A stretch of 62,996 bases of DNA, counting the filler, from Olpidium bornovanus S191 (lineage: Eukaryota; Fungi; Olpidiomycota), in assembly GCA_017911155.1 (NCBI GenBank). It is 30 parts of 30 records of this genome, joined end to end, with 100 filler letters (N's around TTAATTAATTAA, not from the genome) between each part and the next. Parts side by side here need not be neighbours in the genome. Positions count along the whole stretch, not along the records: positions 33,676 to 36,371 come from JAEFCI010001802.1; 29 more parts are not named here. One strand, 5' to 3'. The notes beneath the pieces were generated by a model. It did no database searches and was not told where the DNA came from. It saw only the letters and a program-made list of their open reading frames with translations. Each line of letters starts with the position of its first letter. The stretch's first letter is position 1. A program made the position numbers and the translations under genes. Of the stretch, positions 33,863 to 36,371 are shown one piece after another.

Positions 33863-34819
33863 CTAATAAACCGCCCGGTCCCCGGCGGTGTCAGCAGCAG
33901 CAAAAGCGGCGGCGGTAGGATGCGCGTTGGCGCCGCCGCCCTCCAGGGTCTTAAGGAGGTTGTCCCAGAAGGCGGCGCTGGCGCCGAACCTGAATTTTTC
34001 GGGGCAAACGAAGTCGGGCCCCATGATCTCGCGGGCCAAGTGGACGTACGCGAGGGCGTCCTCGGCGGTGCGGATGCCGCCGGAGGCCTTGAAGCCGGCG
34101 GACGTCCCCGAGATCGCGGTCAGCATCTCGTACGCGTCCTCGAGGGTCGCGCCGACCGGAACCTTCCCGGTCGAGGTCTTGACGAAGTCGGCACCCGCCT
34201 CGACCGCCGCCCTGGCGGAATCCGCGACCGTCCCGGGCACGACGCGGAGCTCTCCGGACTCGATGATGACCTTCACGGCGACCTTCCGGCCGGCGGCGGC
34301 CCTCGCGCGCTCGACGCACGCGGCGACCAGCAGCTTGCACTGCTCCCGCGCGGCGGCGGCCGCGCCGCCGGGCTCCGAGAAGCCCTCGAGAAATCGGCGG
34401 TACGGCCACACGACGTCGATCTCGTCGGCGCCGCGGGAAACGGCCTCCGAGGCCTCGCGCGCGGCGCGGCCGGCGTCCGGGCTCCCGTCCGGGAAGTTGA
34501 CCACGGTGGCGACCAGCGGCGGGGGGCGGCCGGCGCGCCCCGCCTCCAAGGTCCTGCGGGCGGTCTCAACGAAAGGGGAGTGCACGCACACGGCGGCGGC
34601 GCGGCCCAGCCCCTCCGAGCCGCCGCCCAACGCCCTCTCGCACAGCGCCTCGACGGCGGCGCCGGTGTCGCCGTCGCCGAGGGAAGTCAGGTCGGTGAGC
34701 GAGGCGCACAGGCGGACCAGCGCCGCGAGCTCCTCCCTGTTCCCCGCGGCGGCGGCGAGCTGCTCGCCGGCGGCGGCCTTCGCGCGGGCAACCGCCTCTG
34801 TTGCGCGCGCGCGTTCCAT
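33863..34819 (-). CDS. deoC: Deoxyribose-phosphate aldolase (DERA), E. coli/proteobacterial long type, intronless, 318 aa, complete
   Basis: LTDLTSL..GDT, AAVCV, ATVVNFP, ADEIDVVWPYR, KVIIESGEL, GADFVKTSTGK (Schiff-base Lys), GFKASGGIRT, FRFGAS, C-terminal Tyr. Confidence 0.97.
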   Translation of the reverse strand: MERARATEAVARAKAAAGEQLAAAAGNREELAALVRLCASLTDLTSLGDGDTGAAVEALCERALGGGSEGLGRAAAVCVHSPFVETARRTLEAGRAGRPPPLVATVVNFPDGSPDAGRAAREASEAVSRGADEIDVVWPYRRFLEGFSEPGGAAAAAREQCKLLVAACVERARAAAGRKVAVKVIIESGELRVVPGTVADSARAAVEAGADFVKTSTGKVPVGATLEDAYEMLTAISGTSAGFKASGGIRTAEDALAYVHLAREIMGPDFVCPEKFRFGASAAFWDNLLKTLEGGGANAHPTAAAFAAADTAGDRAVY

Positions 34820-34901
34820 CGCCGCCGGGGGTGCGGGGGGCGAGTCGTTTGTCGGTCGTTGGCCTGTCTGTTGGCGGAGGGCGTCTCCTCGTTGGTTGGC
34901 G

Positions 34902-34914
34902 GTTGCCTGGCAGC
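34902..34914. promoter_or_regulatory. RFX X-box-like motif GTTGCCTGGCAGC between divergent deoC and CFAP45
   Basis: One mismatch to GTNRCC(N0-3)RGYAAC. Similar motifs occur at 43596-43609 and 58499-58512. Confidence 0.35.
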
Positions 34915-34988
34915 TGTTTTCTTTCTTTTGTTTTTCCGTTCTTTCCTGGGAAAGTGGCCGTTTCCACGGAGGAGAGGGGGAAAGAAAC

Positions 34989-35028
<40 letters not shown>

Positions 35029-35304
35029 CGCGGGGGTTTCCCCCCGAGGGGCCTTTGCCGGCCCGTAACGGAACGGGCGCGTCCTCTTCGCCGCGCACGT
35101 GCGCATCCGACGGGTCTGAGGGAATCGACCGGAGGCGACGGGGAAGGGAGGCGGGGAACGGGATGCTCCCCGCAGAGCCGCAGGCCCAGCTCGGTAATAC
35201 AAAAGACAGAAAAGAGTCTCTTAAACGGGCGCGCGAAACGCTTGGGTACGCCTTCTCCCTGCCTCTCGGTCATCACCATCTCTCCCCCTCTCCTCCGGTC
35301 GACC

Positions 35305-35388
35305 ATGCGGACGAAGGTCGGTAGAACCTACCCCACCTTCAACCCACCTCTCCTCCCTCCCTTTCCGGGCTTCCTGCTGGCGTGCCTA

Positions 35389-35436
<48 letters not shown>

Positions 35437-36371
35437 TTTTTCCCACCCGCGTCGGTGTTAATAAAAGAGAAAGAAAATCACGACTGTCCACCGCCCCTGC
35501 AGAACTACGCCCCGGAGTCTCGCGGCTCGCTGCAACCGATGCCGCCTCAGAGGTCCTCGGCGCAGGCAGGAAAGGTGGGGTGAGAGGTGGAAACGAGGCC
35601 GGAAGGAGATCGAGGTCCCCACCCCCGCCGCCGGGTTTTTTACCGGCGTGCCCGAAAGAGATCAGCCGGGCCGACCGCAAGGAAAAGCTGACGGGAGGAC
35701 ACGCCCCGGCTGATCTCACTCTCCCCCCTTCCCCCCCCACCGCACTTCACGCCTCGCGGGGCGGCGGACACCAAAAAAAAAATCACAGAACGTGATCTCC
35801 GTGGTCACCAGGGACAACATCCGCACGCTGAAGGCCCACACGGGCAGTGCCGCCAACGCCGCCAAAAGCGCGGCCGTCCTGATCAATCCGAAGGACCTCG
35901 AGCGCGTCCGGAACGCGGCCAAAGTGCTGACTCCTGATGACATCCAGGCGCAGGCCGTTCAGCTCGCCCGCGAGCGGGCGGCCGCCGCGGAGCAATCGCG
36001 AGCTCGTAAGGTTCGTCAGAAATTTGGCCGTCCTCGGCTTCTCGCTACCTTTTTCTCTTTCGCTCTCTCCCGCTCTCTGTCTCTGCCACTCTGTCGCAGA
36101 GGTGCCGCGCGCCTCTCCCCGATACACGCAAACAACCCGCTCCCAAACCCCACCCATTTTTCCCCAGACCGCGCTCTCCTCGAACTGATCGTGTGTGTGC
36201 GCGCGCGGGCACCCGCCGATTTTCCAGCTCAAAATGGAAGAGCTCGAGCTGAAGCGGACTGCCAACGCCAAGCTGTCGGAAGCAGAAATCGAAGCAAAGA
36301 ACCAGAACAATTGCCTTCTCGCCAAGGCGATGATGCAGATCGAAGAGGAAGAAGACGAGATCAAACACATG
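35305..36371 (+). CDS. CFAP45: Cilia- and flagella-associated protein 45 (CCDC19), 5' part; best-supported exons 35789-36010 and 36228-36371
   Basis: VISVVTRDNIRTL...LINPKDLERVRNAAKVLT...SRARK|LKMEELE..R....KLSEAEIEAK.....LLAKAMMQIEEEEDEIKHM resembles the CFAP45 N-terminus. The upstream mini-exons from ATG 35305 are inferred. Confidence 0.85.

Follow-up and report, generated by a model that had tools for sequence, protein, structure and literature searches.

A type-2 deoC gene, probably of bacterial origin, lies head-to-head with the flagellar gene CFAP45 in the root parasite Olpidium bornovanus

Olpidium bornovanus is a zoosporic fungus that infects roots as an obligate endoparasite. Contig JAEFCI010001802.1 of its genome assembly is 2,696 bp long and is present in full in the window, the whole stretch of 62,996 nucleotides that was analysed and whose positions are used below. 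The assembly is metagenome-derived: non-axenic zoospores were used, organisms other than Olpidium came off the roots together with them, and the sequences were binned by tetranucleotide composition plus best-hit filters. The contig was retained by the conservative binning of the assembly's authors. It was compared with contigs from four public runs: X1, the probable source run, and X2, X4 and X9, which carry a second organism label and come from three further studies. The following features were found:

33676–33824, no strand: left flank; 33676–33778 is transcribed, with run contigs extending beyond the contig end
33786–33824, no strand: C13/A18/A7 homopolymer block in the left flank, read from the sequence
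33835–34974, minus strand (inferred from the ORF): unspliced run contigs over deoC, reaching about 128–155 nt 5′ of the ATG and 28 nt past the stop
33863–34819, minus strand: deoC CDS, type-2 (E. coli-like) deoxyribose-phosphate aldolase; 957 bp, 318 codons plus stop, intronless
34820–35304, no strand: head-to-head spacer, candidate divergent promoter; 485 bp, GC 0.59
34990–35024, no strand: A35 homopolymer in mid-spacer, possible poly(dA:dT) promoter element
35040–35316, plus strand: CFAP45 exon 1, from spliced contigs; 5′ UTR from 35040 or before, coding 35305–35316 (MRTK)
35317–35502, plus strand: CFAP45 intron 1, GT..AG, 186 nt, with a T44 tract inside; joint seen in X1, X2, X4 and X9
35503–35574, plus strand: CFAP45 exon 2, 24 codons, from spliced contigs
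35575–35788, plus strand: CFAP45 intron 2, GT..AG, 214 nt, from spliced contigs
35789–36010, plus strand: CFAP45 exon 3, 74 codons, matching CFAP45 residues 79–141
36011–36227, plus strand: CFAP45 intron 3, GT..AG, 217 nt, from spliced contigs
36228–36371, plus strand: CFAP45 exon 4, truncated by the contig end, matching CFAP45 residues 140–188

Rfam and tRNA scans of the 33676–36371 piece gave no match. The deoC gene is flanked by non-coding sequence on both sides (155 nt and 28 nt), with no bacterial gene adjoining.

The minus strand of 33863–34819 carries an uninterrupted frame of 318 codons plus stop, in agreement with the intronless 957-bp CDS described in an initial sequence-only reading of this DNA. 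Its product matched Pfam DeoC (PF01791; 9.9e-20, 71.6 bits, cut-off 23.8) and NCBIfam TIGR00126 deoC (148.7 bits, cut-off 117.3), and its best match among solved structures was the E. coli DERA 1JCL (4.4e-46). All of the E. coli-type motifs named in that reading were present: ATVVNFP, DVVWPYR, KVIIESGEL, TGKVPVGAT, RFGAS and the terminal Y318. The Atlas model for the exact protein sequence was a confident TIM barrel (pTM 0.89, pLDDT 0.87), and a (β/α)8 barrel fold was indicated by this model together with end-to-end alignment with solved DERA barrels. The nearest structural cluster was a DeoC cluster (TM 0.80); the Atlas search returned generic DeoC clusters only.

Residues D43, T45, C78, F109, D135, K183, K214, K219 and K244 were conserved in the Olpidium protein, as were G247, G248, R250, G279, S281 and the terminal Y318. 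Alignment to the E. coli enzyme paired K214 with K167 (the Schiff base lysine), K244 with K201, and D135 with D102; K137, T170, G171, K172, G204, G205, R207, G236 and S238 were likewise kept. Among the 17 active-site and phosphate-site residues checked, the sole exception was S239, replaced by Ala. In the proposed reaction, which completes the catabolism of deoxynucleosides, deoxyribose-5-phosphate would be cleaved into acetaldehyde and glyceraldehyde-3-phosphate. Lys214 would form the Schiff base, Lys244 and Asp135 would relay protons, and the terminal Tyr would close the active site. Judged from its sequence, deoC is an intact gene for an E. coli-type class I deoxyribose-5-phosphate aldolase, with predicted aldolase activity. 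The protein also contains the insertions GGGS, a 10-residue Ala-rich stretch and VERA, as well as a 12-residue C-terminal extension, all of which were found in none of the aligned bacterial homologues. Its GC3 is 0.915, versus 0.79 in the CFAP45 exons, which bears out the host-like, GC3-rich codon usage claimed earlier.

Type 2 was assigned to a protein nearer to the E. coli type than to type 1 (Bacillus, Thermotoga, Mycobacterium) and with a tail ending in Tyr. Olpidium DeoC scored 149–161 bits to native E. coli, Shewanella and Colwellia DERAs and 137–140 bits to two further DERA entries, versus 47–61 bits to type-1 structures; the 161 bits to E. coli DERA compare with 83 to Plasmodium, 55 to Coccidioides, 47 to Entamoeba and 45 to Toxoplasma. 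Its E. coli DeoC type, as first read from the motifs, is thus upheld by bit scores that favour E. coli-type over type-1 DERAs and by the terminal Y318. The ascomycete DERA in PDB (Coccidioides 3OA3), at 55 bits only, is of a different type.

An intron-containing CFAP45 next to deoC had also been proposed, and three GT..AG introns were indeed seen in spliced contigs of four public runs. In PDB sequence searches with single exons, 35792–36010 matched residues 79–141 of CFAP45 of several mammals (E 0.02–0.1), and 36222–36371 matched residues 140–188 of sea-urchin CFAP45 (E 2.5e-6); the two matches are collinear with CFAP45 of solved axoneme structures. Pfam searches with three short exon translations gave no match. 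The joined exons were used only for frame continuity and GC3. Because the first in-frame CFAP45 ATG lies at 35305 according to the spliced contigs, the ATG-to-ATG spacer (34820–35304) is exactly the 485 bp of the head-to-head arrangement first described. Exon 1 contains an upstream ATG at 35163, which is out of frame.

Nearly all of the spacer is 5′ UTR, either of deoC or of CFAP45. Every k=31 run contig ends at the A35 tract and none spans it (34975–35039 masked), and the join between deoC and CFAP45 therefore rests on the deposited contig at this point. The X1 deoC contig enters the tract by 36 nt from the left and the X2 CFAP45 contig by 53 nt from the right, both with flanks identical to the window. 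Both flanks are backed by run contigs, and the tract itself is unbridged. That the A35 tract marks a retro-copy was considered and rejected, since on the coding strand of deoC it precedes the gene and is not at its 3′ end.

The deoC contigs extend over 33835–34974 in X1, 33835–34947 in X2, 33835–34933 in X4 and 33925–34374 in X9. Runs X2, X4 and X9 behave as RNA, because none of their coverage falls in the introns of CFAP45; an unspliced deoC contig is present in all three, and deoC is therefore transcribed in independent samples. As the contigs carry no strand information, we infer transcription of the sense strand from the ORF. Contigs of deoC and of spliced CFAP45 co-occur in all four runs (identity at least 99%), and the depth ratio of the two genes ranges from 2:1 to 1:4.5 between runs. 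Sequence of JAEFCI010001802.1 recurs at 99% identity or more in many runs with one second organism label from at least six studies. Two SNPs were found in deoC: 33953 A>G, synonymous at L289, in X2, X4 and X9; and 34575 G>A, giving P82L, in X2 and X4 (X9 has no coverage there). The 5′ ends of the deoC and CFAP45 run contigs both abut the A35 tract, and the contigs do not give the true starts. This position fits a divergent promoter, and a short promoter region around the poly(dA:dT) tract is probably shared by the two genes.

The best matches of Olpidium DeoC in databases of 5.8 billion and 1.84 billion proteins were bacterial, at 45–52% identity. Among GTDB species genomes the identities were 53% for Saccharospirillum, 49% for Paludibacterium and 47–49% for Vreelandella (Halomonas/Vreelandella), and no bacterial donor above 53% was found in the two protein databases or the GTDB species genomes. 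Other eukaryotic type-2 DeoCs were 35–45% identical. Besides Olpidium, the only fungi with a type-2 DeoC among the named matches were Basidiobolus, found by naming long representatives, and Neocallimastigomycota (gut fungi), found together with Carpediemonas through the Basidiobolus query. Type-2 DeoC is therefore not unique to Olpidium among fungi, intronless copies being present in both of these groups. No other named fungus or animal was among the best 120 matches to the Olpidium and Basidiobolus queries. Animal DERAs were absent from the named minority of the best 120 matches to Olpidium DeoC, from the 29 of 150 representative matches examined (18 of them named) and from the named matches to the Basidiobolus query; a 552-aa tandem DeoC query retrieved fused dinoflagellate proteins and long forms from actinobacteria, and no animal.

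Trees were built from a single-gene alignment of about 250 columns with the site-heterogeneous model LG+C20 and also with FastTree, redundant sequences being removed according to their identities in a fast alignment; the trees contained no DERAs of animals, choanoflagellates or further fungi. Every tree placed Olpidium DeoC among bacterial sequences, outside the dinoflagellate clade (support 98–99) and the clade of Basidiobolus and gut fungi (support 100), and free ML trees never joined it to other eukaryotes. FastTree grouped it with GC-rich bacteria (support 99). Under LG+C20 it was sister to gamma/beta-proteobacteria (UFBoot 81, SH-aLRT 0), an alternative site-heterogeneous placement put it beside one metagenomic sequence (SH 80), and no strongly supported clade in the LG+C20 trees united it with any bacterial group. 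Olpidium DeoC has a long branch (about 1.0) and an extreme composition. Its sister in the FastTree analysis, P0253, comes from a bacterial MAG and is long-branched; it was omitted from the second data set. AU tests did not reject a single clade of all fungi (p=0.435, lnL difference 4.3) or of all eukaryotes (p=0.241, lnL difference 19.5). The horizontal transfer proposed in the sequence-only reading is thus only partly supported: the E. coli type and the position among bacterial sequences agree with it, a strongly supported bacterial clade was not obtained, and the AU tests leave both monophylies standing.

Two insertion sites are common to Basidiobolus and gut fungi and absent in Olpidium and all aligned bacteria. 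Olpidium diverges between the Basidiobolus and gut-fungus lineages in the Chang et al. 2021 species tree. Because these insertion sites are absent from Olpidium, its deoC appears, from the alignment, to have an origin separate from that of the type-2 copies in Basidiobolus and gut fungi.

We consider it reasonably likely that O. bornovanus has a nuclear type-2 DeoC that is an old bacterial acquisition, adapted to its host, separate from those of other fungi and transcribed divergently from CFAP45. On the separate question of its age and source, deoC is probably an old, well-adapted bacterial gene. It would have entered the Olpidium lineage long ago from a gamma/beta-proteobacterium-like or other GC-rich bacterium, and the later adaptation may be seen in its GC3 of 0.92, its Ala-rich insertions and tails and its eukaryotic UTRs; deoC and the flagellar gene CFAP45 would now be transcribed in opposite directions, probably from one short promoter region, common to both, at the poly(dA:dT) tract. 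Expression and adaptation to the host are supported by the unspliced contigs with flanks in the three runs without intron coverage and by the GC3 of 0.915 versus 0.79. Descent from an old eukaryotic or early-fungal type-2 DeoC, surviving patchily in Olpidium, Basidiobolus, gut fungi, Carpediemonas and dinoflagellates and lost elsewhere, is in our view unlikely; the proteobacterial resemblance would then reflect slow evolution in bacteria plus composition effects. It draws on the AU tests, which reject neither fungal (p=0.435) nor eukaryotic (p=0.241) monophyly, on intronless copies in three early-diverging fungal lineages on genuine fungal scaffolds, and on an Ala/Lys-rich N-terminal helix extension common to Olpidium, gut fungi and Carpediemonas. 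However, Olpidium DeoC is less identical to the other fungal copies (35–38%) than to many bacteria (45–52%), the free ML trees keep it apart from other eukaryotes, and it lacks the insertion sites common to Basidiobolus and gut fungi in spite of the intermediate position of Olpidium in the species tree. Very many losses would be needed, and no other named fungus or animal is among the best 120 matches to either query.

Two further explanations concern the contig itself. The sequence-only reading judged simple contamination unlikely, and we agree. The intronless, GC3-rich deoC lies head-to-head with a spliced CFAP45 and is transcribed in independent samples. That the assembly fused bacterial deoC sequence to eukaryotic CFAP45 sequence at the A35 tract is highly improbable, even though it was made from non-axenic zoospores with tetranucleotide binning, the contig has only 2,696 bp and the join falls exactly at a 35-nt homopolymer spanned by no run contig. 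Identity to bacterial proteins does not exceed 53% in the databases searched, the Ala-rich insertions and tails are not known from bacteria, the flanks (155 nt and 28 nt) are non-coding and without a bacterial neighbour gene, and GC3 is similar in deoC and CFAP45. Moreover, both genes occur together in 4 of 4 runs, three of them RNA-like and from further studies, and contigs enter the A tract from both sides with flanks identical to the window. Linkage of deoC to the spliced CFAP45 is seen in the deposited contig, the A35 between them being the part unspanned by run contigs. Gene and linkage could be real and the contig belong to another root-dwelling flagellated eukaryote, which we hold to be quite improbable. 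Further organisms were washed off the roots, binning relied on composition and best-hit filters, and the CFAP45 exons are too short for taxonomic placement; but the contig passed the authors' conservative binning, its recurrence at 99% or more under one second organism label in at least six studies is as expected of a common root parasite, and the high GC3 and short GT..AG introns are consistent with the assembly.

Taken alone, Olpidium DeoC would be an ordinary metabolic enzyme, and transfer of such a gene into fungi has published precedent in gut fungi. A 250-column single-gene tree decides little here, with strong bacterial similarity alongside AU tests that reject nothing. Should the transfer be real, a DeoC of bacterial type would be present in a third lineage of fungi, after gut fungi and Basidiobolus, which would suggest that deoxynucleoside salvage is repeatedly acquired by host-associated fungi. 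The physiological role of the enzyme may include the scavenging of host DNA sugars. The full combination of an independent bacterial acquisition, a bidirectional promoter with CFAP45 and an aldolase of zoospores or early infection that burns deoxynucleosides from host DNA seems doubtful.

Among known systems, E. coli DeoC/DERA (1JCL, 1P1X; b4381) is 42% identical to the Olpidium protein over 254 aligned residues. Both have the Schiff-base Lys, the equivalents of K201 and D102, Cys47, the glycines and the serine that bind phosphate and a Tyr at the C-terminus, whereas Olpidium DeoC differs in an N-terminal extension of 27 residues, three Ala/Gly-rich insertions within the protein, a C-terminal tail 12 residues longer and the change of S239 to Ala; its gene is solitary, whereas E. 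coli deoC belongs to the deoCABD operon. Dinoflagellate DeoCs (Prorocentrum cordatum, Biecheleria cincta, MMETSP) also have E. coli-type domains and the terminal Tyr, but are about 40% identical, form a separate clade (support 98–99) and occur in tandem DeoC-DeoC, PNP-DeoC and PfkB-DeoC architectures, whereas Olpidium DeoC is single-domain. Human DERA is classed as DeoC type 2 in UniProt, in the same family, and is similar in length to Olpidium DeoC (318 aa). The DERAs of Basidiobolus meristosporus and B. ranarum (ORX97936.1 and paralogues) are likewise intronless fungal type-2 DeoCs, amid ordinary eukaryotic genes, but are 37–38% identical and fall together with the gut-fungus clade and the bacteria related to it. 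In Neocallimastigomycota, DeoC has been listed as horizontally acquired (Murphy et al., bioRxiv 10.1101/487215). These gut fungi (Neocallimastix, Anaeromyces, Piromyces) resemble Olpidium in being zoosporic and in having an intronless, bacterial-like type-2 DeoC on a fungal scaffold; their protein, however, is 35% identical, belongs to another clade (support 100) and carries the two insertions that Olpidium does not have.

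The contig under study, JAEFCI010001802.1 (2,696 bp), occupies positions 33676-36371 in reversed orientation and belongs to assembly GCA_017911155.1, the genome of Olpidium bornovanus S191 (Chang et al. 2021, PMC7865070). Zoospores rinsed from cucumber roots, and not axenic, were the source of both DNA and RNA, and binning by tetranucleotide composition with best-hit filtering cut the raw assembly from 187 Mb to 29 Mb (PMC7865070); contamination and mis-joins must therefore be weighed. Within 2.7 kb there are three long homopolymer blocks, 33786-33824 (C13/A18/A7), 34990-35024 (A35) and 35393-35436 (T44, in CFAP45 intron 1), which interrupt all k=31 contigs and could account for the high fragmentation of the assembly.

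Gene structure was read from Logan contigs of four public runs placed on the window with the homopolymer blocks masked: X1, the probable source run (organism A), and X2, X4 and X9, which carry a second organism label (B). The features are as follows.

33863-34819, minus strand: deoC ORF, 318 codons and a stop, unbroken
33835-34974 (X1), 33835-34947 (X2), 33835-34933 (X4) and 33925-34374 (X9): unspliced deoC contigs, one per run
35040 or further left, plus strand: extent of the CFAP45 5′ UTR
35305-35316, 35503-35574, 35789-36010 and 36228-36371 onwards, plus strand: CFAP45 coding exons
35317-35502, 35575-35788 and 36011-36227, plus strand: CFAP45 introns, GT..AG

Long ORFs occur in several frames of the GC-rich deoC locus, and homology was found only in the deoC frame. 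The protein matched Pfam DeoC (9.9e-20), NCBIfam TIGR00126 (148.7 bits, cut-off 117.3) and, over residues 38-296, E. coli deoxyribose-phosphate aldolase (DERA) 1JCL (4.4e-46); the ESM Atlas model for the identical sequence is confident (pTM 0.89). Comparison with E. coli DeoC from NC_000913.3 showed that D16, T18, C47, F76, D102 and K137 (Olpidium D43, T45, C78, F109, D135 and K183), the Schiff base K167 (K214), T170, G171, K172, K201, G204, G205 and R207 (T217, G218, K219, K244, G247, G248 and R250), and G236, A237 and S238 (G279, A280 and S281) are all conserved, with S239, replaced by Ala, the sole difference among the functional residues compared. The C-terminal residue is Tyr, and every motif quoted in the sequence-only reading was found.

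Each of the three CFAP45 splice joints was present in 4/4 runs, and the frame, joined by script, is unbroken across them. Similarity searches used separate exons rather than the joined model: translated exon 35792-36010 aligned to CFAP45 residues 79-141 of solved axoneme structures and 36222-36371 to residues 140-188 (E 2.5e-6 versus the sea-urchin protein), the two matches being collinear, while a Pfam search of the short exon translations gave no match. The gene call in our collection (245 aa, L001 1-1391) disagrees with the RNA-supported model (150 aa to the contig end). An out-of-frame upstream ATG lies at 35163-35165 in the 5′ UTR, and its spliced frame stops within exon 3.

X2, X4 and X9 cover the exons of CFAP45 but give zero depth over its introns, and hence behave as RNA runs. 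The uninterrupted ORF and single unspliced contigs in these runs bear out the earlier description of deoC as intronless, and place it in RNA from independent samples, alongside the spliced flagellar transcript. From the ORF we infer transcription from the sense strand, the contigs carrying neither strand nor true ends. Two differences from the window, 33953 A>G (synonymous, Leu289; X2, X4 and X9) and 34575 G>A (P82L, a non-catalytic position; X2 and X4, X9 having no coverage there), are ordinary strain variation. At the left flank, 33676-33778 is covered by X1, X2 and X4 contigs extending past the contig end, a further transcribed unit that stops just short of the C13/A18 block.

The deoC-CFAP45 stretch recurs in the probable source run and in organism-B runs from at least six other studies; that the contig derives from another root-associated flagellate in the non-axenic material is very improbable. 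A chimeric join of the two genes is the least probable explanation. All contigs stop at the three homopolymer blocks and none among the Logan contigs of the four runs (k=31) spans A35, but this break is not evidence of a chimera, because a k=31 assembly cannot traverse a 35-nt homopolymer. Contigs from both genes enter the A tract with flanks matching the window, the X1 deoC contig extending 36 nt beyond 34974 and the CFAP45 contig of X2 reaching 53 nt leftward from 35040. Against a chimera, both genes are present together in 4/4 runs, their codon bias is alike (GC3 0.915 for deoC, 0.79 for CFAP45), no bacterial gene lies next to deoC, and the protein carries GGGS, 10-residue Ala-rich and VERA inserts and a longer C-terminal tail unknown in bacterial homologues. 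The spliced contigs reproduce the reported 485 bp between the two ATGs. Since RNA contigs of both genes approach A35 from opposite sides, leaving about 65 nt, a common divergent promoter is plausible; deoC:CFAP45 depth ratios ranging between 2:1 (X2) and 1:4.5 (X4) do not indicate tight co-regulation.

The best matches in a word-index search were bacterial, at 45-50% identity (Vreelandella/Halomonas, Thalassospira, Idiomarina and others). An exhaustive search of 1.84 billion representatives gave identities of at most 52% and only 157 proteins at E <=1e-30, and among GTDB species genomes matches came from Saccharospirillum (53%), Paludibacterium (49%) and Vreelandella (47-49%). The top-scoring matches (P0002, P0014, P0121) are tandem DeoC proteins, dinoflagellate according to a search with P0002. 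Naming of long representatives found a fungal member, Basidiobolus meristosporus ORX97936.1, which in turn retrieved two B. ranarum paralogues, three anaerobic gut fungi (Neocallimastix, Anaeromyces and Piromyces) and Carpediemonas. No animal protein was among the named matches to the Olpidium protein and its relatives. The protein of the metamonad Carpediemonas membranifera (P0464) is of the same type, 45% identical to that of Olpidium, and resembles it in carrying an Ala/Lys-rich helical extension at the N terminus. The EukProt transcriptome protein P0100 is sister to E. coli DeoC within the enterobacterial/Pasteurellaceae group, and is probably bacterial contamination or a very recent transfer.

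FastTree (278 rows) placed the Olpidium protein inside a 44-row clade (support 99) of sequences from GC-rich bacteria, Solirubrobacteraceae and Elstera among them, as sister to a long-branch protein of a bacterial MAG. The careful IQ-TREE analysis (LG+C20+F+G4, PMSF; 85 rows) made it sister to a gamma/beta-proteobacterial clade (UFBoot 81, SH-aLRT 0), with no strongly supported clade around it. A quick tree under the same model, with other fungi included (82 rows), left its placement unresolved, adjoining one metagenomic row (SH 80). The tree is unable to settle the placement, given ~256 columns, a terminal branch of nearly 1.0 and the protein's extreme composition. Ancient inheritance, fungal or eukaryotic, followed by many losses is not rejected by the AU test, whether fungi (lnL lower by 4.3, p=0.435) or all eukaryotes (lnL lower by 19.5, p=0.241) are constrained as one group; identities, free trees and indels disfavour it, and we regard it as unlikely. 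In an alignment of structure-guided quality, two insertion sites are common to Basidiobolus and the gut fungi, one ahead of the LLKVI strand and the other behind the helix that leads into FRIGAS; neither occurs in Olpidium or in any aligned bacterium. In their species tree, Chang et al. (PMC7865070) place Olpidium between Chytridiomycota sensu lato and Zoopagomycota, so a shared vertical origin for all three fungal genes would need precise loss of both insertions in Olpidium. The indels thus favour a separate origin that would set the Olpidium gene apart from other fungal copies, with the caution that the inserts of the two groups differ in length and are of unproven homology.

Taken together, the observation of an E. 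coli-type deoC beside CFAP45 stands, while its interpretation as a proteobacterial acquisition is only partly supported, bacterial placement having no decisive tree support. We favour, with some reserve, a functional DERA gene that resides in the nuclear genome of Olpidium and probably derives from an old, host-adapted bacterial transfer. Judging from the enzyme family, it may act in catabolism of deoxynucleoside-derived deoxyribose-5-phosphate; a link to host DNA is speculation.

Dinoflagellate E. coli-type DeoCs (P0002, P0121, P0270, P0273, P0275, P0276; L002, L003) have double or triple tandem domains, occur as fusions to purine-nucleoside phosphorylase (PNP-DeoC) or a PfkB-type kinase (PfkB-DeoC) (Prorocentrum cordatum, Biecheleria cincta, MMETSP), and formed their own clade (support 99) in the quick tree. 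The type-2 DeoCs of Basidiobolus (P0260/P0426/P0427, L086) and gut fungi (P0430/P0434/P0438, L087) formed there, with uncultured bacteria, one 25-row clade (support 100). Together with the two insertion sites that they share and bacteria lack, this suggests either a single origin or a transfer from one fungus to another between two gut-dwelling lineages. The genes of Basidiobolus and Neocallimastix, like that of Olpidium, have no introns; they lie on fungal scaffolds of 161 kb and 864 kb, and Murphy et al. (bioRxiv 10.1101/487215) list DeoC as horizontally acquired in gut fungi. Bacterial-type DeoC in early-diverging fungi is thus already known, and the Olpidium gene is a further case.
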